From sequence record NC_048182.1: a stretch of DNA of 64,000 bases; one strand, written 5' to 3'. The position numbers and the translations under genes are program-made. Every line of letters begins with the position of its first letter. Position 1 is the stretch's first letter. The notes beneath the pieces were generated by a model that was not told the origin of the DNA, ran no database searches, and saw nothing but the letters and a program-made list of their open reading frames with translations. Shown in pieces: positions 1,597 to 49,599 of the stretch.

Positions 1597-3756
1597 ATGG
1601 AACAGAATAAATTCCGCTTCAAGACTTCCAAAGCTGGCGGCGATCTTAAAGCAATCATTAATGGTATCGCGTCTGGCCGTCTGACTGAAGCTAAAGGCGA
1701 TCTTACCTCGATCGTCGGCAACGAGTCTATGACCTCTACGCTGAAAACTCTGCAAAGTGGCATGACCTACGGTCAGCAGGCAGCAGTTGCTTCTGCTATC
1801 GAAGGTGCTAGCAACAACGGTAACTTCCAAACTCGCGCTGAACAACTGCGTGACATGATTAAACACGGCGGTATGGAATCCTTCTCCATGCAGATGGACG
1901 CTGGTGCAGTAGCTCGTCAGAAAGCTGCTACCATCGAACTGAACGCCCGTTCTAACCGTCAGTGGGAAGCTGCCGAAACTCTGTACCCAACTCTGGTTGT
2001 TCCTTATGACCAGGAAGCGCTGGTTCTGCCAATCGACATCGCTGGTGTTGGTGCATACAACAGCTCTGGCAATGCCAACGAAGCTTTTGAAGATCTGCGT
2101 CCAATCGCATCCGTTCTGTCTGACAGCAAATTCAACGCTGGCGACGATCTGAAACTGGTACCTGTGTTGCCTGCCAACCCGGCTGATGCTAACGCAGCAA
2201 TGTTCGTTCCTTCTGCTGACTTCACTCCGTGGGATGCTACCTACGATGCGAACGATCTGCTGAAACGTGAATCCCACAAAACGAACTACCTGGCGATCCG
2301 CAAAATCAACAACCTGCTGTCCCTGTGCCGTGCACCTGGTTCCGCTGCGTTCGAACAGAACGATGAAATCGAATCTTCTTCTATCCGCCTGGATAGCCTG
2401 CTGCTGAAAGTGAAAACTAAAGACGGCGAAGGTTTCGTAACTCTGGACACCAGCAACATGTCTGGCGTTGCAGCACGTCCTTCTACTGGCGTGACTTCTG
2501 ACGAAAAACGTCAGATCAACTTCGTTCTGAACAACCTGGCTGTAACTCAGCTGAAAGACGCAGCTGGTGCATCAACCACTCTGTTCAAATCTCTGCAAGA
2601 CGCTGGCCTGAAAGTGTTCGTTTCCCTGGAACTGAGCGCTACCTACCATCGTTCTACCCGTACCTGGTCTCCAACTGTATCTCCAGTTGCTATTGCTTAC
2701 GTTATCAACCGTGACGGTGATCGTCTGGTAGTTGGTTCTTCTGCAATGCCTGAAGATGTTGCGACCCTGATTACTGCTCAGGCGCTGGATGCAAGCATCC
2801 ACGGTGTTCTGCTGAAAATGAACCACGCTAACACCAACCGTAGCCGTTATGGTACTACTGTTGTATACGCTAACACTCAGAAAACGTACAACATTAACCG
2901 TCGTCAGCCGATCTCTGTTAAGTACCCAATGCTGGATACTGATAACAACGCTGATGTTCTGGCTATGCTGGTCCAGCAGATGGACATCATGGTTACCCGT
3001 AACATGTCTCATGACGCATTCAAAGCTGCCAACGCGCACTTCGATTACGTTTACGACAACAACGGTATGAAGATTGTCAACATCAACGATGACTCTTCTT
3101 CTGTACTGCCTGGTCAGCACTTCCTGGGTACTGTCGGTATCGAAACTACGATCGATCTGATCAAAGAAGTTTCTACTCTGGACAGCAAAGACACCCTGGA
3201 CAACATCCGTGCTGCCCTGGTTAACAAAATCTACGACATCATCACCGGTCTGCGTATCCGTTCAAACCTGTCCGCATTGAAAGAGCTGGATGGTCGTTCT
3301 GAAGAATACGACATCGTTGCACACGCAGCGCTGGCTCCGTTCCTGATGACTGTTGGTGATTACCGTACCTTCGGTACCAACATCAAGTTCAACATCGTTG
3401 AAACGAACATCGATTCCGAAATCGGTCGTATGTGGGTTGTTCCTAAGTCTCAGACTAAGAACGGCGACATCGACATCTTCGGCGGCATGGGTATCTGTGT
3501 CACCAAAGAGCTGCTGGTAATCGAAGGTTCTGTACAACAGTCTGATCGTCAGTACCGCATGATCATCACTCAGCCTGCTTACCAGCACCACTCTCTGTGC
3601 CCGGTAGCTGGTCGTCTGACCATCGCTGACATCGATAAACTGATGGGCGATGACGGTCTGATCTCTCAGGTGAACAAACACCTGGTTGAAGTGACTGGTA
3701 CCCTGGACACTGGCGCAGCTGCTGGTTCTCAGGAAATCCCGGTTGAGATTCCATAA
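1597..3756 (+). CDS. major capsid protein (phiKZ gp120/SPN3US gp75-like)
   Basis: 719 aa with very strong high-expression codon bias and an N-terminal propeptide carrying G-x-E-S sites. Its position between the helicase and the nvRNAP fragment matches phiKZ-like synteny. A strong terminator follows. Confidence 0.85.
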   Translation: MEQNKFRFKTSKAGGDLKAIINGIASGRLTEAKGDLTSIVGNESMTSTLKTLQSGMTYGQQAAVASAIEGASNNGNFQTRAEQLRDMIKHGGMESFSMQMDAGAVARQKAATIELNARSNRQWEAAETLYPTLVVPYDQEALVLPIDIAGVGAYNSSGNANEAFEDLRPIASVLSDSKFNAGDDLKLVPVLPANPADANAAMFVPSADFTPWDATYDANDLLKRESHKTNYLAIRKINNLLSLCRAPGSAAFEQNDEIESSSIRLDSLLLKVKTKDGEGFVTLDTSNMSGVAARPSTGVTSDEKRQINFVLNNLAVTQLKDAAGASTTLFKSLQDAGLKVFVSLELSATYHRSTRTWSPTVSPVAIAYVINRDGDRLVVGSSAMPEDVATLITAQALDASIHGVLLKMNHANTNRSRYGTTVVYANTQKTYNINRRQPISVKYPMLDTDNNADVLAMLVQQMDIMVTRNMSHDAFKAANAHFDYVYDNNGMKIVNINDDSSSVLPGQHFLGTVGIETTIDLIKEVSTLDSKDTLDNIRAALVNKIYDIITGLRIRSNLSALKELDGRSEEYDIVAHAALAPFLMTVGDYRTFGTNIKFNIVETNIDSEIGRMWVVPKSQTKNGDIDIFGGMGICVTKELLVIEGSVQQSDRQYRMIITQPAYQHHSLCPVAGRLTIADIDKLMGDDGLISQVNKHLVEVTGTLDTGAAAGSQEIPVEIP

Positions 3757-3853: not shown

Positions 3854-3877
3854 ATATAAATTTAGGCAGATATTATC
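3854..3877 (+). promoter_or_regulatory. putative phage RNAP promoter
   Basis: ATATAAATTTAGGCAGATATTATC is 22/24 identical to 49576..49599. Both copies directly follow a terminator. The core resembles the phiKZ early motif TATATTAC. Confidence 0.6.
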
Positions 3878-6795: not shown

Positions 6796-9204
6796 ATGAA
6801 CCCGAATCCACAAGTACTGCGCGGCGCACAAACAAATACCCAAGTTAACCAACCACTTGGGACTACTCAACCACAACAGCAAACCGCTCCACAAAACCCA
6901 CTGAATAACTTGGCGGCACTGGCAGCTCGTTTCTCCGGCAACGCTAATGGTCAAGGGACTAACAGCAACCTCTATAATTTCGCCGGTAACAAATCTGGTC
7001 ACATGACCGGACTGTTTGCCATGGATGAAAGTATGGCGGAAGAGCAGATGAAAACCCAAGCCCTTACAGAGGGTGGTCAATATGCAGGTAGTATTGCCAA
7101 TATCCTTCTGAGGCGTTCTGGTAAACATCCGTTCTATCATTCCCTTCAGGCAGCAATGGATCGTTTCAAAACTCCAATCAAAGGCGGGAACCAAGAGCAA
7201 GGGTTCGTTGACTTTGTAAACGAGTTGAACTTCAACCAGGCACTGTATAACTTTGTCTGTTTACAAGTTGCTATTCAGTACGGTATTGAATTTGCAATGT
7301 TGGTAACATCTGGCGATGATCGGATACGAGACCCAAGTGCTCGTGATCTTCAGACAGGTCTTCTTTATCGCGTGGCTTGCGATACAATTTGGATGCAGTA
7401 TTTTGACTGGATTAGTAACAACCCGGAAGGAACACAGTTGTTCCATCGTCTGAGCCAACGTGCTCGTGAAAGTGCGATTAAAAATGATCAGATTATTCCG
7501 GAAATGATCATGCAACGTTATACCTGGGGATTGCAACAATGTCCATGGCGTGGTGGGCGTATTGCAGAAATGCAAGGTCGTCAACAAGCTGGTTCCCCAA
7601 TTCTCGATGTTGTTACTCCTACTGACTTAGGTTTCGGTGGTTCATTCCATAACCCTAATAGCCTGTTCGGAGACAACGGTGGTAATCAGGAAAATATCGA
7701 TGTAGAAGGTACTCGCGAAATGTGGGCCTACATCCATCGTAAAGCTTCTGCTAAAATGCAGGACATGCAACAAGGCGCTGGCTTTGCTCATGCTGTAGAT
7801 GCTCCACCTGCTGTAATCTATAGCAACTATGACAAGCCTGAGCTTCGTCTTTCTGATATCACAGTTGAGAACCGTCATCAATATAGCTTGAATGATTATG
7901 GTGTTCAAGTTCCTGGGACGGATTGGTGGATTATCAAGAATGAAAATATGGCTTACATCGGTCGCGTATTACGCCTGCCAGATGGATCCACTCTTCGTCT
8001 CCTTGATACTCGTTGCGTTGGTACGGTTCCGGTCTATCGTATTAACTGGCATAGTGGGTCGCTTGAATATAAGCTGATTCCACATAAACTTCAGATGGTG
8101 GATGTGATGGAAGCTTTAATTAGTGATCCTTCAAAACTTCTTCCTTATATGTATGAGGAAGATGGTATCCAGAAAACTACATTCGATCTGAATGTGATGG
8201 AAACCAACAAATTTATCAACGACGGTAAGATCATCCCAGTTGGTGAATTAAAAGAATTGGAGCGTCAGCCTAATATGTTGATTGCTTCCAAAGCTGCAGA
8301 TCTAACCCGTGAAAATGATCAAGTCATGGGAATCATGACTACCCTGGTAAAACAGCACGATCCTAAGAACAAACTGGACGCGTTCGTATTACCAACCCTG
8401 CTGAACCGTGATTTCAAAATGGAAGACGATACCAATATGGATTCCTTCTATGAATCATTCGGTCGTATGGTAAAAGGTGGTAATGAAGGAATAAAAGATA
8501 CCGGTCGTATTCTCCGCTCCATTCGTGTTGCGCTGAATGATTATCAGGATACTGAGTTCGCTGGTTTCGTAGTGCCGTATGTAACTAACCTGTTCAACCG
8601 TTTCCTGGTAGAATGTCGTGGTTATCATGAAACTCGTGATGACTTCAATGCTGCTAACGGTGAAGGTTGTTATCTGCGTTCCAAACATGTGTTTGATGAC
8701 CTGGAAGAGATTATTGAGCTGCTAGGCGAAAAAGACCCAGCAACTCTGGCTGCATTCATGTCATTTGAAACAAATGAGTTCTTCCGTGACAACCTGGAAA
8801 TTCTGTTACCACGTGAGAAAGCTCAGTCTAAACTGGAAGCTCTCTTCGGTAAAGAAGATCCTGAATTACTTCCGGCATTGAAAGCTAATGCTGACAAGAC
8901 AATTGTAATGACTCGCGAAACCGTGATCATTGAAGTTAAGAAACAAGTTCCACCGCGTCAGTGTGAACAAGTTATTCTGAAAGCTTCTGGTAACCCAATG
9001 TTCTTTGCTGTGGTGAAAGAAGCACTGAAGAAATCGGCCAAGCACTTTGGTCCGACCCCACAAGTTCTGATTCGTTTCCATAACGATACTGACCGTAAGA
9101 TCTGGGTGGCTACGCCGAGCGATTTCGATCCTCAGCATGTTATCCATTTGCGTGCTGTAGATCAGGTTTGTAATCTGGTTCATCCATACCCGGTTGTAAG
9201 CTAA
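6796..9204 (+). CDS. large conserved jumbo-phage hypothetical protein
   Basis: 802 aa with a Q/N-rich low-complexity N-terminus. Follows the nvRNAP fragment; a terminator lies downstream. Confidence 0.8.
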   Translation: MNPNPQVLRGAQTNTQVNQPLGTTQPQQQTAPQNPLNNLAALAARFSGNANGQGTNSNLYNFAGNKSGHMTGLFAMDESMAEEQMKTQALTEGGQYAGSIANILLRRSGKHPFYHSLQAAMDRFKTPIKGGNQEQGFVDFVNELNFNQALYNFVCLQVAIQYGIEFAMLVTSGDDRIRDPSARDLQTGLLYRVACDTIWMQYFDWISNNPEGTQLFHRLSQRARESAIKNDQIIPEMIMQRYTWGLQQCPWRGGRIAEMQGRQQAGSPILDVVTPTDLGFGGSFHNPNSLFGDNGGNQENIDVEGTREMWAYIHRKASAKMQDMQQGAGFAHAVDAPPAVIYSNYDKPELRLSDITVENRHQYSLNDYGVQVPGTDWWIIKNENMAYIGRVLRLPDGSTLRLLDTRCVGTVPVYRINWHSGSLEYKLIPHKLQMVDVMEALISDPSKLLPYMYEEDGIQKTTFDLNVMETNKFINDGKIIPVGELKELERQPNMLIASKAADLTRENDQVMGIMTTLVKQHDPKNKLDAFVLPTLLNRDFKMEDDTNMDSFYESFGRMVKGGNEGIKDTGRILRSIRVALNDYQDTEFAGFVVPYVTNLFNRFLVECRGYHETRDDFNAANGEGCYLRSKHVFDDLEEIIELLGEKDPATLAAFMSFETNEFFRDNLEILLPREKAQSKLEALFGKEDPELLPALKANADKTIVMTRETVIIEVKKQVPPRQCEQVILKASGNPMFFAVVKEALKKSAKHFGPTPQVLIRFHNDTDRKIWVATPSDFDPQHVIHLRAVDQVCNLVHPYPVVS

Positions 9205-9211
9205 TCCAAAT

Positions 9212-9241
9212 GAGAGAATCGGGCGAAAGCTCGGTTCTCTC
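9212..9241 (+). terminator. intrinsic terminator-like hairpin
   Basis: GAGAGAATCGGGC-GAAA-GCTCGGTTCTCTC. Confidence 0.7.
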
Positions 9242-9360
9242 TATGCTTACTAAAGTCACTGTAGTGGCTTTTATTATATAGATAGATAATGTTCTGTCTT
9301 TATTGTAAAAGCTTCTGAGAATGCTTTATATTGCGCTTAAACTATACACAGGAATAACAA

Positions 9361-9792
9361 ATGAAAACCTTTACAACTTCTATCTTCGTACCTGCTAAAT
9401 TCAAAGCTGAATTGAACGCCATGCAGGAAATGGAGATCTCTCGTAAGTTGTTTAACCGTGCAATTCCGATCACTGATGATCTTGGTACGGGTGCTTTAGA
9501 TGATTTAAAATCAGACGAGGAATTTATCCTTATCGTTAACGGTGAAGTTGAGAAACATCATCTCAAAATGAAAGTCTCAGCTCACGGTGCCGGTAAACCT
9601 CGTGTGATGTTTGTGGAACCTGAACTTCCAGAAGTTAAACGTTTTATTGAGTGGCGTATTGATCAAACTAAACGCATGGCTCAAAAGAATAAAACACAAT
9701 ACCAATTACGTAACTTCACTACTGTCGATCTTCGTCGTCTCATTCGCAGTGCTTTTGTTGGACGAGAATGTAACCACGTTAACTATCGTTGA
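9361..9792 (+). CDS. hypothetical protein
   Basis: 143 aa, SD AGGA. Confidence 0.75.
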   Translation: MKTFTTSIFVPAKFKAELNAMQEMEISRKLFNRAIPITDDLGTGALDDLKSDEEFILIVNGEVEKHHLKMKVSAHGAGKPRVMFVEPELPEVKRFIEWRIDQTKRMAQKNKTQYQLRNFTTVDLRRLIRSAFVGRECNHVNYR

Positions 9793-45199: not shown

Positions 45200-45808
45200 A
45201 TGACCAAAGCTCTGATTCCTCTGTTCAATGCAACCACCGAATCTTACTTCGTATCCGCACCACTGCTCGCTCCTTCCGAGGTAGAGTTTGACAACGCCGA
45301 TATGTTTGACCGTGGGATGTATCAAACAAGCGATCTGTCTGTTGGTGTTCGTCTTCCTCTTGAATTGCTGTGTAAGCTTCCGTGTTCCCACTGGACAGCT
45401 AATGACAGCATTGATCTTCAAACCCTGGCTTTGAAACACATCACCTTCCTGGCTGAAAATACAGTAACTGGTGAACGTCAGGTTCTGACCACTGGTGATC
45501 TGTTTGGTATTTCTGGTGGTAAAGCAGTACCTCCGGTTGATAGTCCTTTTAAGAAAGCGATTATCGATTTCCATATCAAGCATTTCTCTACCCGTCTGTT
45601 GAAAGCAGTAACCGCTGAACCGGTTACTGTATTTGGTAACAACGAAGGGTTCCATACTCACTTCAATCTGAAAGTGACGTATTCCCCCCACACTGACATT
45701 CTGGACTCTGTTGGTTTGGTAGAGAAATGTAGCAATCCTGATGTGAAACTGAGCATTATTGGTTTTGCTCTGCATGCCGAACACGAACGTGTTAGTTTAG
45801 CTGCTTAA
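45200..45808 (+). CDS. hypothetical protein
   Basis: 202 aa with high-expression codon bias. The N-terminus resembles 39406; the protein ends in ...VSLAA. Confidence 0.75.
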   Translation: MTKALIPLFNATTESYFVSAPLLAPSEVEFDNADMFDRGMYQTSDLSVGVRLPLELLCKLPCSHWTANDSIDLQTLALKHITFLAENTVTGERQVLTTGDLFGISGGKAVPPVDSPFKKAIIDFHIKHFSTRLLKAVTAEPVTVFGNNEGFHTHFNLKVTYSPHTDILDSVGLVEKCSNPDVKLSIIGFALHAEHERVSLAA

Positions 45809-45814
45809 CTGGAT

Positions 45815-45840
45815 GAGTCCTGGGGTAATACCTGGGACTC
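45815..45840 (+). terminator. terminator
   Basis: GAGTCCTGGG-GTAATA-CCTGGGACTC followed by a T-rich tract. Confidence 0.65.
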
Positions 45841-45893
45841 CTCTATTTATATCTTTTATTTTCATTTTATGTCACCTAACCGAGGCTTGCATT

Positions 45894-48032
45894 ATGCAAT
45901 TAGTCGTGTCTGCGACTCCTGGTACCGGTAAATCTACCATTACCAAGAACGCTGAGAAGTATGGACTGAATCACTGCCATGTTCATTATGACAATCACAC
46001 CCGTGAATATGAACTGACGGTTCCTAACAGTCCGCTGGTACCAGTATTCGATTCCGATTCATCTACTTTTGATAAGAGCGAATTCCCTGGTAACTATATT
46101 AAACACATCAAAGAGGTTCTTGCTAAGTTCCCTGATGTGGTAATCTTCGTTTCCTCTCATGACAATGTCCGTGAAGCAATGGCCGAAGCCGGTATTAATT
46201 ATGTACTTGCTTACCCAGAGCGTGAACTAAAGGGCGACTATCTGGAGCGTTATAAAGAACGCGGTTCCCCGGAGAAGTTCATCGCCCTTATGGACGAGAA
46301 GTGGAACGATTTCATTGACTCAGTTCAAGCTGATAAAGCTGAACGTCATCTCGTTTTATCTGAAGGAGAATTCCTCGTGGATGTATTAAAATCCGATCTC
46401 GAAGCAATAGGTAGTCAAGTTGATAGCGTCTTCCCTACTGCGATCATTAGTGGTACTGAAAGTATCGGTGACGTAGTTTGCGACGATGTAGGTCAACCTG
46501 TTGCTGTTTGGGGTTCAAATGGTCTGGAACCTCTTCCGTCTACAGAACCTGTTGCTGACGTGGTTGTGGTCACTGATCCATTAGCGGTTGCTACCCCAGA
46601 ACCTACCACTGTGATTCCTAAGGACTCTGATCCTGCAGCTGTTGTTCCTCAACAAGATTTCTCCACTGCTATTATCACCGGTAACGAATCAATCGGCGAA
46701 ACTGTCTATGACGACATTGGGACTCCGGTAGCAATCGTGGGTGAGGTTGGTCTGGAACCTTTGCCGGTTACGGAAATCGTTCCTATTGAGGTTATCGTTG
46801 ATGTCAACGCTGAACCGGTAGAAGAACCACCTGCAGCTATGGATCCTCAGGACACCCCAATTCCGGTGACTTCCATGCCCGAGCAAATGCAAGCTCCTGA
46901 CCCGGTCCCGCCAGTATCTGGTCAACCTGCTGTTGATGCACCTGAAGTACAAGCTCCAGCAGAGGAAGTAGTTGTGGTGGTAGATCCAGGCGCTGGTACG
47001 GTTCAGGTAGATGGTCAAGAAGATAACGATCTTCCTGTGCCAGAAAACAACATCCCTCCTGCTTTACAGGATATGGATAAAGCTGAACTGATTGAAAACT
47101 ATCATGAGCTTAATGACGACGTCACTGTTCTTGAAGCGGTTATTGATGTTTGTCAGACTGATGATCGTGGTGGTCTGGAAGGTTATGAAGATAACGGCCC
47201 TGTCTTCACCAAAGCTGTTGAACATCTGAAAGAACGTTATGGTGCAACAGTAGAGCCTACTTTGGCTGGCTTGGAATCTTTCTTAGAAGAACTTAAGAAA
47301 GTTGGGACCGCAGTTAAACGCGCGTTCTCTGATCCAAAAGCTGCTCAAGCTAAAGTTAAAAACGCCCTGTGGGAACTTAGCAAAGCGAAAGATGAGTACA
47401 AGTCACCCGCTTGGCAAAATAAACAGGATTGGATCAACGTTGGTAAAATCCGCGTCGATGTTCCAAGCTTCTTAAAAGAAGCCAATTCTCCAGAAGAAGT
47501 AGGTACTGCGCTTAAACTTGTAATTAAGCGTATTGTTGATGCTTCTGAGAAACACGGTAAGAACGATATTGCTCGCCACAAAGCAGCTATCAAAGTGTTC
47601 AACGCTACTAAAGGTTGGGATCCTAAAGAGAAGACCGCAGCTGACGCTAAAGAACTCCTGGATTCTATTCCTGAACCTTTGGGCGATGCTGTAGGTGACG
47701 CAGGTCTGAACGAACTGAATACCAAATTGGTTTCTGTTGAACTTCCGGCTATTCCTAAAACGAATGTGGTTAAAGTTGTTGAACTGATGGATATGCTGTC
47801 CCAAGCTTCTTCCGATATGTTTAAACACGAAGATGCTATTCCGGAACATCTGGGTTGGGAACAATATTCTAAGAATAAATTCCTGACCGATATCAATGCT
47901 TCCAAAGTTTACAACATTATCAGTTCCGAAGCAGACGAACCAGCTTGCTCTGTAATTAGTTCTGCCTATTACAAACAGTTCTTAAACGTGGCCAAGTTCC
48001 TCGAAATGTGGATCTTGCGTTCTACTAAGTAA
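45894..48032 (+). CDS. putative virion head protein with N-terminal P-loop domain and acidic Pro/Val-rich linker
   Basis: Likely start ATG 45894 (SD GAGG). N-terminal VVSATPGTGKST; two 34-aa repeats containing G-x-E-S; AGLESF before a helical C-terminal domain. Confidence 0.65.
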   Translation: MQLVVSATPGTGKSTITKNAEKYGLNHCHVHYDNHTREYELTVPNSPLVPVFDSDSSTFDKSEFPGNYIKHIKEVLAKFPDVVIFVSSHDNVREAMAEAGINYVLAYPERELKGDYLERYKERGSPEKFIALMDEKWNDFIDSVQADKAERHLVLSEGEFLVDVLKSDLEAIGSQVDSVFPTAIISGTESIGDVVCDDVGQPVAVWGSNGLEPLPSTEPVADVVVVTDPLAVATPEPTTVIPKDSDPAAVVPQQDFSTAIITGNESIGETVYDDIGTPVAIVGEVGLEPLPVTEIVPIEVIVDVNAEPVEEPPAAMDPQDTPIPVTSMPEQMQAPDPVPPVSGQPAVDAPEVQAPAEEVVVVVDPGAGTVQVDGQEDNDLPVPENNIPPALQDMDKAELIENYHELNDDVTVLEAVIDVCQTDDRGGLEGYEDNGPVFTKAVEHLKERYGATVEPTLAGLESFLEELKKVGTAVKRAFSDPKAAQAKVKNALWELSKAKDEYKSPAWQNKQDWINVGKIRVDVPSFLKEANSPEEVGTALKLVIKRIVDASEKHGKNDIARHKAAIKVFNATKGWDPKEKTAADAKELLDSIPEPLGDAVGDAGLNELNTKLVSVELPAIPKTNVVKVVELMDMLSQASSDMFKHEDAIPEHLGWEQYSKNKFLTDINASKVYNIISSEADEPACSVISSAYYKQFLNVAKFLEMWILRSTK

Positions 48033-48149: not shown

Positions 48150-49514
48150 ATGTCTCGTGCTTCTGATATCCGTACTTATATTGTTGCTCGTCAACCGAGT
48201 ATGACCATTGATGAACTTTATGTTCTCGTTGCTCAATTGCATGCCTCTGTTGATGCACTGATCTCTCTTCGTCAAAATAACGAAAAACCACCAATGACGG
48301 TAGAGGTTAAAAATATTGCGCTGGAACTGCGCGGTAACAAGTTACACACCAAAGAAGGAATCGTGTTTACACCTTCTTCTCTGCAAACCTTTACTGAAAC
48401 TCTGCTGTTAATGAAGGGTGCAATGGGGTTAGGGTCTCGTACCTTCGCAACCCTCATTCCTGAGCTCTATGGCGACCTTCTGCTGGCTTGCGCTAACGTC
48501 GAGACAGATGTGGCTAAGATCAACAGTGAGATCTTTAGCGGGCTTCTGAAGCGCTATCACAATCGTGCTCGTGTAGGGGCTAATAACGACTATCAGTTCA
48601 AATACCGTCTTTCTACCTGCAAGAGTCGTTTCATTACTTTCGATCTGAAGAACATGACGTTTGATGATAAAGATCATGTAGATTTTGATATCGAGGTTAA
48701 TGACCCTATTCTACAGGAAGCGCTGGGTGGTCATCATCGTTACCCAATGCCTACTGGGAAAGTTGCATCTCAGCGTATCAGCGATAAACTGAAATGCGCA
48801 TTCACCGAAGTCCAGAGTGAAGATGCTATCTTGTTAATGGTCAATAAACTTCGTAAATACGGGATGGAACTTCATGAAGTGTATGACCTTCTGGAAATAG
48901 TAGCAGGTTGGGTATGTGGTAAGAAGCTGGCTCTCACAGTAGTGTGTCAGGATTTCGTATGTGGTCACCACCATGTGAGTTTTGCTCGTGCGGAACCTGA
49001 CTTCGATAAGGTCAGCGTCGTTATCCATGATGAAGGTCGCAGTATCATTCTCGGTGATAAGTTCTCTGCCAAAGAAATTGTTGATTACGTTAATGAACCG
49101 TTTATTAAAGAGCGTGTTCGTAATACGAGGTATCTCCCTAACTCAGTTATCAACTCTATGTTGATCATGGATAGCAAAGAACGTGAGATCTATTTCAGTT
49201 TGATCGAGAAAGAAATCAATCCCGATCACATTGACTTCGCTACCCGAGCGGCCCCGGTTGAAACCCGTTTAGTTGTGGTCGCACCAATGGTTTACACCGA
49301 TGATGTATTGTTCCGCTTACACATGTTCAGTGATACCTCTGTGATGACTACTCTTTCACTGGTCTCTCATCGTGAAGCGCTGGAAAGTTCTAGAACCATT
49401 CGTGCTTTGATGTCCTCAATAGAGGCTGATAAACGTGAAGTTGATTGGACTAATGTGATCACTCCGAAGGTTGGATTCTGGGCTAAAGTAAAACGTCTTT
49501 TTAAAGCAGCATAA
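48150..49514 (+). CDS. hypothetical protein
   Basis: 454 aa, SD AAGGA; ends in ...LFKAA. Confidence 0.8.
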   Translation: MSRASDIRTYIVARQPSMTIDELYVLVAQLHASVDALISLRQNNEKPPMTVEVKNIALELRGNKLHTKEGIVFTPSSLQTFTETLLLMKGAMGLGSRTFATLIPELYGDLLLACANVETDVAKINSEIFSGLLKRYHNRARVGANNDYQFKYRLSTCKSRFITFDLKNMTFDDKDHVDFDIEVNDPILQEALGGHHRYPMPTGKVASQRISDKLKCAFTEVQSEDAILLMVNKLRKYGMELHEVYDLLEIVAGWVCGKKLALTVVCQDFVCGHHHVSFARAEPDFDKVSVVIHDEGRSIILGDKFSAKEIVDYVNEPFIKERVRNTRYLPNSVINSMLIMDSKEREIYFSLIEKEINPDHIDFATRAAPVETRLVVVAPMVYTDDVLFRLHMFSDTSVMTTLSLVSHREALESSRTIRALMSSIEADKREVDWTNVITPKVGFWAKVKRLFKAA

Positions 49515-49523
49515 TGTATGACA

Positions 49524-49552
49524 CCCAACTACCTCCATTAGGGGTAGTTGGG
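49524..49552 (+). terminator. intrinsic terminator
   Basis: CCCAACTACCTC-CATTA-GGGGTAGTTGGG followed by a T-rich tract. Confidence 0.75.
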
Positions 49553-49575: not shown

Positions 49576-49599
49576 ATATAAATTTAAACAGATATTATC
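49576..49599 (+). promoter_or_regulatory. putative phage RNAP promoter
   Basis: ATATAAATTTAAACAGATATTATC, 22/24 identical to 3854..3877. Confidence 0.6.

Follow-up and report, generated by a model that had tools for sequence, protein, structure and literature searches.

The question raised by this locus is why a phage joins, in one reading frame, a P-loop domain of kinase type to a domain that resembles an internal head protein. The window, by which we mean the whole 64,000 nt stretch of record NC_048182.1 that was analyzed, is part of the genome of Edwardsiella phage pEt-SU (MK689364, 276,734 bp), a jumbo phage related to phiKZ and placed in the genus Petsuvirus, and the gene in question is pETSU_097. 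A sequence-only reading, based on the letters and their open reading frames (ORFs), had proposed that this frame encodes a tripartite fusion in which the chemistry of head-protein propeptides carries an enzyme into the prohead or releases it there. The ORF is real, with an ATG, a Shine-Dalgarno sequence and a stop codon in place, and codes for 712 amino acids (aa). Proteins of this type are labeled publicly as 'hypothetical', 'polynucleotide kinase', 'kinase' or 'protease', and our literature search found no paper on the pETSU_097 protein. We observe here the domain architecture and its conservation, the specificity of its site motif for head proteins, the homology between its C-terminal junction and internal head proteins, and a maturation protease gene in the same genome. 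The reading we prefer, with a probability of about 0.6, is that pETSU_097 is a late-expressed head polyprotein whose kinase is delivered in the capsid. One part of it, that the protein is a protease substrate associated with the head, we hold with good confidence; another part, that the kinase is retained in the head and ejected, is tentative, at somewhat less than even odds.

The maturation proteases of phiKZ (gp175) and SPN3US (gp245) cleave head proteins after the Glu of a small-x-Glu motif (SLE, SQE, A-x-E), the propeptides often hold several sites, and both enzymes also cut their own C-terminus (PMC5694885, PMC10052503). A protease of the gp175 type is encoded by pEt-SU outside the window (genome 218825-219676, 283 aa, E 5.4e-26 against phiKZ gp175); it is detected with the phiKZ gp175 sequence but not with the Peptidase_S77 profile (PF03420). 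It carries GGME/A (the slash marks the cut) at residues 248-252, 35 residues from the C-terminus, which by analogy with the reports for gp175 and SPN3US gp245 is likely to be a C-terminal self-cleavage site.

The head gene cluster of pEt-SU (pETSU_036-062, genome 33428-65756 and partly window 1597-3756) is collinear with phiKZ gp82-gp120. It was compared with the clusters of six relatives in 29 orthologue families, and all invariant G-x-E columns were listed. A clade motif, G-x-E-[S/G/A] followed by a hydrophobic residue ([FLIMVY]), is fully conserved across the seven phages in families 036, 037, 038, 042, 046, 049, 050, 051 and 054 and in the major capsid protein 062 (three-digit numbers alone denote pETSU genes). 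The capsid protein has GNESM at 41 (after E43) and GMESF at 92 (after E94), families 036, 037 and 038 have two sites each, and 042, the protein in the phiKZ gp86 position, has three. The internal head protein 050 (PF12699-type) has three canonical sites as well as GQESA at residue 13, and its similarity to relatives begins at residues 79-85, directly past GME83; family 040 has the variant GMEFM (G-x-E-F-M). The fully conserved motif is absent from DNA polymerase, helicase, 044, 045, 056-059, ligase, RNase H, 096 and 098. It offers a testable maturation-protease motif for the OBP/pEt-SU clade and predicts where the capsid protein and some ten further head proteins would be processed. As to 042, its label 'tail length tape measure protein' looks wrong, since it sits in the gp86 position and matches a 'virion structural protein' PHROG.

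Three canonical sites are found in pETSU_097, namely GTE189/S, GLE429/G and GLE461/S, and they are conserved in OBP, Survivor and nearly all of 50 orthologues. The last two are the GGLEG (residues 426-430) and AGLES (458-462) sequences that the sequence-only reading had picked out; both are present and belong to the clade motif, which is otherwise fully conserved in head-module proteins only. That inventory was incomplete, as it missed the third conserved site, GTE/S (187-190), at the end of the kinase domain. This first site is kept as G-x-E-S-[ILM] in pEt-SU, OBP, Survivor and most of the 50 orthologues, and the final site, GLE461, lies within an almost invariant EPTLAG[LM]E[GS]F. Within the kinase fold itself (175 residues), the orthologue comparison found no conserved cut site.

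When the pETSU_097 family was aligned by hhalign with the 29 head families, it matched 037 at 87% probability (E 4e-6), 036 at 85% (E 6e-6), 050 at 77% (E 2e-5) and 038 at 50%; 042 was weak at 17%, and every remaining head-module family scored 5% or less. In 036, 037 and 050, both G-x-E sites and the following helix, F-[LM]-[DE]-x-[LIV]-K, fell into register. Judged by these profile alignments, the two-site segment of pETSU_097 shares homology with the propeptide junction found in internal head proteins of the same phage, one of which, pETSU_050, is a member of PHROG 5750 (E 1.5e-66). A model of the C-terminal 318 residues is mainly helical, with a predicted local distance difference test score (pLDDT) of 89.6 that rises above 90 across residues 462-712, and the tail of the domain, F-L-E-x-W-I-L-x-S-x-K, is invariant.

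Searches with the C-domain gave a graded picture. Scans of Pfam, NCBIfam and PHROG returned only a weak match to the unnamed PHROG 6709, which was not found in SPN3US or phiKZ, and Foldseek returned no match in the PDB at E<=1e-3. In BFVD, the matches that ranked next to the family's own members came from Psa21, 201phi2-1, Noxifer and PhiEaH1 and were virion or internal head proteins (E 1e-5 to 1e-3); over all BFVD matches to phiKZ-like proteins of these kinds, E ran from 1e-8 to 1e-3, with template modeling (TM) scores of only 0.3-0.49. ESM Atlas neighbors included PF12699 clusters, at a score of 0.87 that is below the lead threshold of 0.9. The top VIA match was the phiKZ capsid chain 8y6v_G, which is gp86 (Z 7.4, root mean square deviation (rmsd) 4.9 Å, 154 residues), and this was the only solved chain to align over the mature domain (model residues 96-318). 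In phiKZ, gp86 is an inner vertex-complex protein that is processed at SQE (PMC5694885). Orthology of pETSU_097 with gp86 was considered and rejected: the syntenic counterpart in pEt-SU is pETSU_042, hhalign between gp86 and the 097 family gave 0.2% probability, and tblastn with gp86 matched Pseudomonas phiKZ-like phages only. Given this counterpart and a Z score below the VIA caution level for helical proteins, we speak of the same kind of protein and not of orthology. The likeness to phiKZ-type internal head proteins claimed in the sequence-only reading has support at the level of fold and of profile-profile comparison, but not at Pfam or PHROG thresholds. Such proteins (phiKZ gp93-97, gp162 and gp86; SPN3US gp53/gp54; PF12699) have, like pETSU_097 as predicted, a helix-rich domain placed after a multi-site propeptide. 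They are cut at S-, A- or G-x-E in phiKZ and at A-x-E in SPN3US, and pEt-SU is likewise phiKZ-related with an S80-family protease. Unlike them, pETSU_097 has a folded enzyme and a long acidic linker at its N-terminal end, is encoded outside the head cluster and falls below Pfam and PHROG thresholds.

The N-terminal domain is confidently modeled as a P-loop kinase fold, in agreement with the kinase-like domain described from sequence. Residues 3-175 match the uncharacterized PHROG 4182 (E 8.7e-53), as do 42 of the 43 family members, and the AlphaFold model (43 family members) has a three-layer alpha/beta fold at pLDDT 91.7. The Walker A motif, GTGKS, occupies residues 10-14 on the loop between strand 1 and helix 1, with GKS or SKS in all orthologues that have the N-terminus. 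The catalytic P-loop is thus kept in essentially all orthologues, and FDSDSS (D53, D55), SSH..VR and R..YxxRGSP are almost invariant among them, so the domain looks like an active kinase. Foldseek gave 53 PDB matches at E<=1e-3, almost all of them kinases, and the VIA matches (Z 8.5-9.3, rmsd 3.2-4.1 Å, 138-152 residues) tied among AK6/hCINAP, guanylate, shikimate and gluconate kinases and the Clostridium thermocellum polynucleotide kinase. With P-loop kinases such as AK6/hCINAP/Fap7, guanylate kinase, shikimate kinase and Cth Pnkp, the domain shares the overall fold, Walker A and an acidic motif after strand 2, but sequence identity is 7-20% and no single family stands out. Pfam AAA_18 stayed below its cut-off (19.7 bits against 29.4), NCBIfam kinase models matched at E 0.03-0.13 over the P-loop only, and PDB sequence searches, whether by single domain or by family profile, returned no meaningful match, those to protein A being dismissed as repeat noise.

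Homologues that consist of the kinase alone are encoded by T4-like phages of Acinetobacter and Morganella, T5-like phages of Salmonella, AR9, jumbo phages of staphylococci and others, and almost all are annotated as 'hypothetical'. These PHROG 4182 proteins (PS2_0143, Acj9p047, those of T5-like Salmonella phages and the 'AAA family ATPase' of Bacillus phage AR9) share the domain of about 140-170 residues and its motifs at 35-53% identity. They differ from pETSU_097 in being free-standing, in lying in early or DNA-metabolism regions, and in having neither a protease-site linker nor a head-protein module. As to substrate, our leading guess is a polynucleotide 5'-kinase that would work with the ligase, prompted by the tight pairing of ligase and kinase genes in phage PS2; the invariant D53 and D55 (in FDSDSS) and R119-x-x-x-R123 are candidates for the general-base Asp and the paired Arg residues of such an enzyme, and in fold Pnk ties with five further families of kinases.

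The joining of the two domains is genuine, and it is conserved. By tblastn, the two-part protein was matched in Pseudomonas phage OBP (gp161, 810 aa, the orthologue of pETSU_097), Pantoea phage Survivor, Kosakonia phage Kc263 and Klebsiella phage N1M2, and also in Erwinia phage AH04, Shewanella phage SXP01, Serratia phages Yubaba and Sureiya, and Aeromonas phages D3, D6, D9 and LAh10. A word-based search of 5.8 billion proteins gave at least 50 clusters of about 500-990 aa, and both domains were present in all but two, these being a cut-off entry of 499 aa and one without the kinase N-terminus. Contigs covering pETSU_097 in metagenomes (four runs from three studies; silage, sediment and insect) showed substitutions only within the ORF, and all indels in the region were 3' of the stop codon. 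The sequence-only reading had suggested looking at gene layout in relatives, and Aeromonas phages of the genus Ferozepurvirus do carry the halves as separate genes, about 7.5 kb apart. The stand-alone kinase gene, PS2_0143 (168 aa), starts 2 nt after the end of the DNA ligase gene, and the C-module gene, PS2_0153 (339 aa), is flanked by RNase H and a transcription regulator, which is the syntenic position. This layout might be taken to mean that a lost stop codon or frameshift, introduced in sequencing or assembly, had joined two genes of pEt-SU. However, the genus is a different one with its own arrangement, either ancestral or alternative, so its separate genes are not evidence for an artefact, and the same continuous ORF recurs in OBP, Survivor, Kc263, N1M2, AH04, SXP01, the Serratia phages and Aeromonas phages D3 and LAh10, in dozens of metagenomic contigs, and in independent contigs without indels. 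An artefact is refuted by these data and has practically no probability left.

Two further arrangements were seen. OBP has a kinase-less paralogue of the C-module, gp162 (8444-9715 of the OBP stretch examined), adjoining gp161, in which the two-site propeptide unit is a tandem duplicate (residues 33-70 and 130-166); in pEt-SU, neither a gp162-type paralogue nor any second copy of the C-domain was found in the genome, and pETSU_098, tried as a candidate, has no similarity to the domain. The orthologue P0050 (629 aa), from a 267-kb contig listed as Salmonella enterica, starts within the kinase domain at SSHD and lacks the P-loop. Either its start was called wrongly, or the N-terminus is naturally truncated in a jumbo phage concealed within a bacterial assembly.

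The linker between the two domains is acidic and rich in Pro and Val, as had been noted from sequence: residues 176-394 hold 40 D+E against 1 K+R (net charge -39), with 18% Val and 16% Pro. Its length ranges from 14 to 443 aa among orthologues, with a conserved element, G-x-E-S-[ILM]-G-D, just past the kinase fold. The 34-aa duplication that was reported within it is also real, as the copies are identical at 23 of 34 residues, whereas the best of 200 shuffles of the linker reached 13 of 34; a repeat search at the DNA level did not pick it up because the copies are only 62% identical in DNA (63/102). Each copy was read as ending in GLEPLP, and NGLEPLP is conserved only among the more closely related orthologues. 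With Pro at P1', GLEPLP is not counted as a likely cut site, and on this point the tripartite interpretation is not supported, while on the conserved fusion and the head-type motifs it is.

Signals around the gene fit late expression, short as the motif concerned is. The late promoter consensus of phiKZ is TATG, with the G as the start (PMC4666361). Upstream of 097, a block of CATTTTATGT[CT]A is kept in the pEt-SU, OBP and Survivor orthologues, while the surrounding spacers are divergent, and the seven phages keep TTATG or CTATG blocks ahead of the major capsid gene and of head genes 051 and 056. A 13-mer, TTATTTTCATTTT, common to the regions upstream of 097 and of head gene 046 was given no weight because the OBP and Survivor orthologues do not share it in their upstream regions. 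The early promoter of the clade does not precede pETSU_097. This OBP-type promoter (…CAGATATTATC…, consensus taken from PMC7058600) is found 5' of the endolysin gene 089, gene 063 and the helix-turn-helix (HTH) gene 099. The operon of pETSU_089-096 (endolysin, ligase, RNase H) terminates ahead of 097, and 097 and 098 form their own transcription unit. No public RNA run was found to contain pETSU_097.

Packaging, cleavage, retention and ejection of the kinase, as well as its substrate, are what we infer from sequence, and the proposed course of events would be as follows. The C-terminal module resembling internal head proteins, together with its two-site propeptide, would take pETSU_097 into the prohead, where a protease of the phiKZ gp175 type would cleave it on the C-terminal side of the G-x-E glutamates E189, E429 and E461. 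The predicted products are a 21.2-kDa kinase (residues 1-189), a 25-kDa acidic linker, a 3.5-kDa spacer of 32 residues and a 27.9-kDa C-domain (462-712). The linker would leave the capsid, probably being cut further or disordered enough to exit, and the 28-kDa helical domain would stay as an inner head protein. Cleavage at site 1 (E189) would free the kinase, and since its fold has no conserved internal cut site it would stay intact in the shell, making delivery with the DNA plausible; a trapped kinase delivered in this way would provide a ready-made enzyme as infection starts. The phage thus probably loads a kinase-type enzyme into its capsid. The proposal at its widest, that OBP, pEt-SU, N1M2, Kc263, AH04 and uncultured relatives package a P-loop kinase upstream of an internal-head-protein propeptide, free it by the protease and inject it ahead of any phage gene expression, is more speculative and would sooner fail than hold.

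Several points weigh against a head polyprotein. pETSU_097 lies outside the head module, directly 3' of the endolysin/DNA ligase/RNase H operon, and stand-alone homologues of its kinase are found among early genes near the dCTPase in Acj9 and directly after DNA ligase in PS2, from which the basic role of the kinase would be intracellular. Both PF12699 and PHROG 5750 match only one of the 43 family members (E 0.025 and 0.024), neither match being significant, and the Z score of 7.4 for gp86 is below the caution level. In the OBP record, gp161 and gp162 are labeled 'hypothetical protein', whereas many head-module genes are given as 'putative virion structural protein'. Head propeptides of SPN3US are N-terminal and largely cleared (PMC5694885), the literature examined held no studied precedent for an enzyme in the propeptide position, and no virion or cleavage data for any orthologue were found in it (OBP, N1M2, ZPAH34, AerS_266, Aeromonas veronii giant phages, RisingSun). 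The protein could instead be a non-virion enzyme of DNA or RNA repair or nucleotide metabolism, with a C-domain for oligomerization or localization and G-x-E motifs that are unused relics. Its gene adjoins ligase and RNase H, the PS2 kinase gene begins 2 nt past the ligase, homologues stand alone in early regions of T4-like and T5-like phages, OBP gp161 has no structural label, and one of the equally good top fold matches is a polynucleotide kinase. Against this, three canonical sites, one of them at the kinase boundary, are kept in highly diverged orthologues whose linker is hypervariable, and the motif is elsewhere confined to head proteins. A terminator also separates 097 from the early operon, and the gene has its own conserved TATG element. 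We consider such an enzyme unlikely.

A head or scaffold-type protein is also conceivable in which the kinase is not cargo, the N-terminal part acting before or during assembly and then being degraded or expelled as ordinary propeptides are, so that only the C-domain stays. All identified SPN3US cleavages bar the self-cleavage of the protease give N-terminal propeptides, with extra sites thought to aid clearing, and the linker of pETSU_097 is acidic in the manner of scaffold or propeptide regions. On the other hand, a folded 21-kDa domain, in which there is no conserved cut site, would need to exit a closed shell, its catalytic motifs are strongly conserved, and the cleaved phiKZ proteins gp93 and gp162 keep both halves in the head. 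We consider a discarded kinase rather improbable, and a head polyprotein with the kinase as cargo is the preferred reading.

Phage T4 provides a parallel to this reading, as its Alt protein is an enzyme that is packaged and later injected via a targeting segment, and foreign proteins have been packaged by fusion to such capsid targeting sequences (CTS). Published T4 work cited in PMC5694885 describes how capsid targeting sequences secure the entry of a protein into the prohead, and on that precedent the idea of an engineered route for enzyme cargo, raised in the sequence-only reading, is not new in principle. Common to T4 and the proposed pETSU_097 system is prohead uptake via a segment that the prohead protease (gp21 in T4) removes after Glu. 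The T4 CTS is a short N-terminal tag of 10-20 residues with its cargo on the C-terminal side, whereas pETSU_097 has its enzyme at the N-terminus, and targeting would presumably fall to an internal propeptide module together with an entire head-protein domain. The cargo would also differ, a P-loop kinase in place of an ADP-ribosyltransferase. What is known already, then, is the carriage of proteins into the prohead on protease-removable sequences (T4) and the processing of internal head proteins in phiKZ, 201phi2-1 and SPN3US; pETSU_097 differs in its layout, which places a folded enzyme ahead of an internal propeptide module and carrier, with a freely variable linker and clade-wide conservation.

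Dozens of proteins are injected by jumbo phages of the phiKZ group, and to our knowledge the virion RNA polymerase is nearly the only one with an assigned activity. A kinase loaded by means of head-protein chemistry would, if our reading is correct, be a concrete and assayable injected enzyme, and might heal 5'-OH ends left by host nucleases or interfere with host defense. It would represent delivery of an enzyme in the propeptide position, which is not described for phiKZ-like or T4-like phages, and would give a first handle on, and functional context for, PHROG 4182, a P-loop family of T4-like, T5-like and many jumbo phages. The modular layout of enzyme, disposable linker of any length, two-site junction and head-protein carrier suggests a cargo-loading route for jumbo phage capsids.

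Table 1. Features of pETSU_097 and its surroundings, in window coordinates.
Feature	Position	Strand	Remarks
Terminator ending the upstream endolysin-ligase-RNase H operon	45815..45840	+	Hairpin and T-run; 10-bp stem, 6 GC pairs (terminator scan)
Conserved CATTTTATGTCA element	45863..45874	+	Holds TATG (45868-45871); candidate late promoter of the non-virion RNA polymerase (nvRNAP) type, or transcription start
pETSU_097 coding sequence	45894..48032	+	712 aa plus stop; identical to the annotated pEt-SU gene
P-loop kinase-fold domain, residues 1-175	45894..46418	+	PHROG 4182 match, model, fold matches, conservation
Acidic Val/Pro-rich linker, residues 176-394	46419..47075	+	Composition; probably disordered
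Repeat copy 1, residues 182-215	46437..46538	+	Includes site 1 and NGLEPLP
Candidate protease site 1, G187-T-E189/S190 (SGTE/SIGD)	46452..46463	+	14 residues past the last kinase helix
Repeat copy 2, residues 258-291	46665..46766	+	In closest relatives only
Propeptide-like module, residues 395-461	47076..47276	+	Helical hairpin between GGLE429/G (47172-47180) and AGLE461/S (47268-47276)
Predicted mature C-domain, residues 462-712	47277..48029	+	Helical, 27.9 kDa, isoelectric point 7.7, 251 residues
pETSU_098	48150..49514	+	454 aa; orthologues come after 097 in OBP (gp163) and Survivor
Strong terminator closing the 097-098 unit	49524..49552	+	12-bp stem, 7 GC pairs

The longest ORF of pETSU_097 starts at 45813 and its stop codon is at 48030-48032. 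The true start is the ATG at 45894, which has a GAGG Shine-Dalgarno sequence (45882-45885) eight bases before it and lies past the hairpin/T-run terminator (Table 1). The downstream gene, pETSU_098, matched no family, carries none of the conserved protease motifs, and is probably co-transcribed with pETSU_097, as judged from the lack of a terminator in between.

Cores of the OBP-type early promoter, ATTTAGGCAGATATTAT and ATTTAAACAGATATTAT, are located at window positions 3860-3876 and 49582-49598, before pETSU_063 and the HTH regulator 099, respectively. A similar core, ACAGACCGATATTATC, lies before 089 at about genome position 102120, ahead of the endolysin-ligase-RNase H operon, and the endolysin gene would therefore belong to an early-type operon. 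The gene preceding the terminator, pETSU_096 (window 45200-45808, 202 aa), has a homologue in OBP gp160 (E 9e-17). Its residues 4-95 weakly match the major head protein family PHROG 3231 (E 1.4e-5) over a middle segment, positions 226-322 of 746, so that the early operon might end with a gene for a fragment or mimic of a capsid protein.

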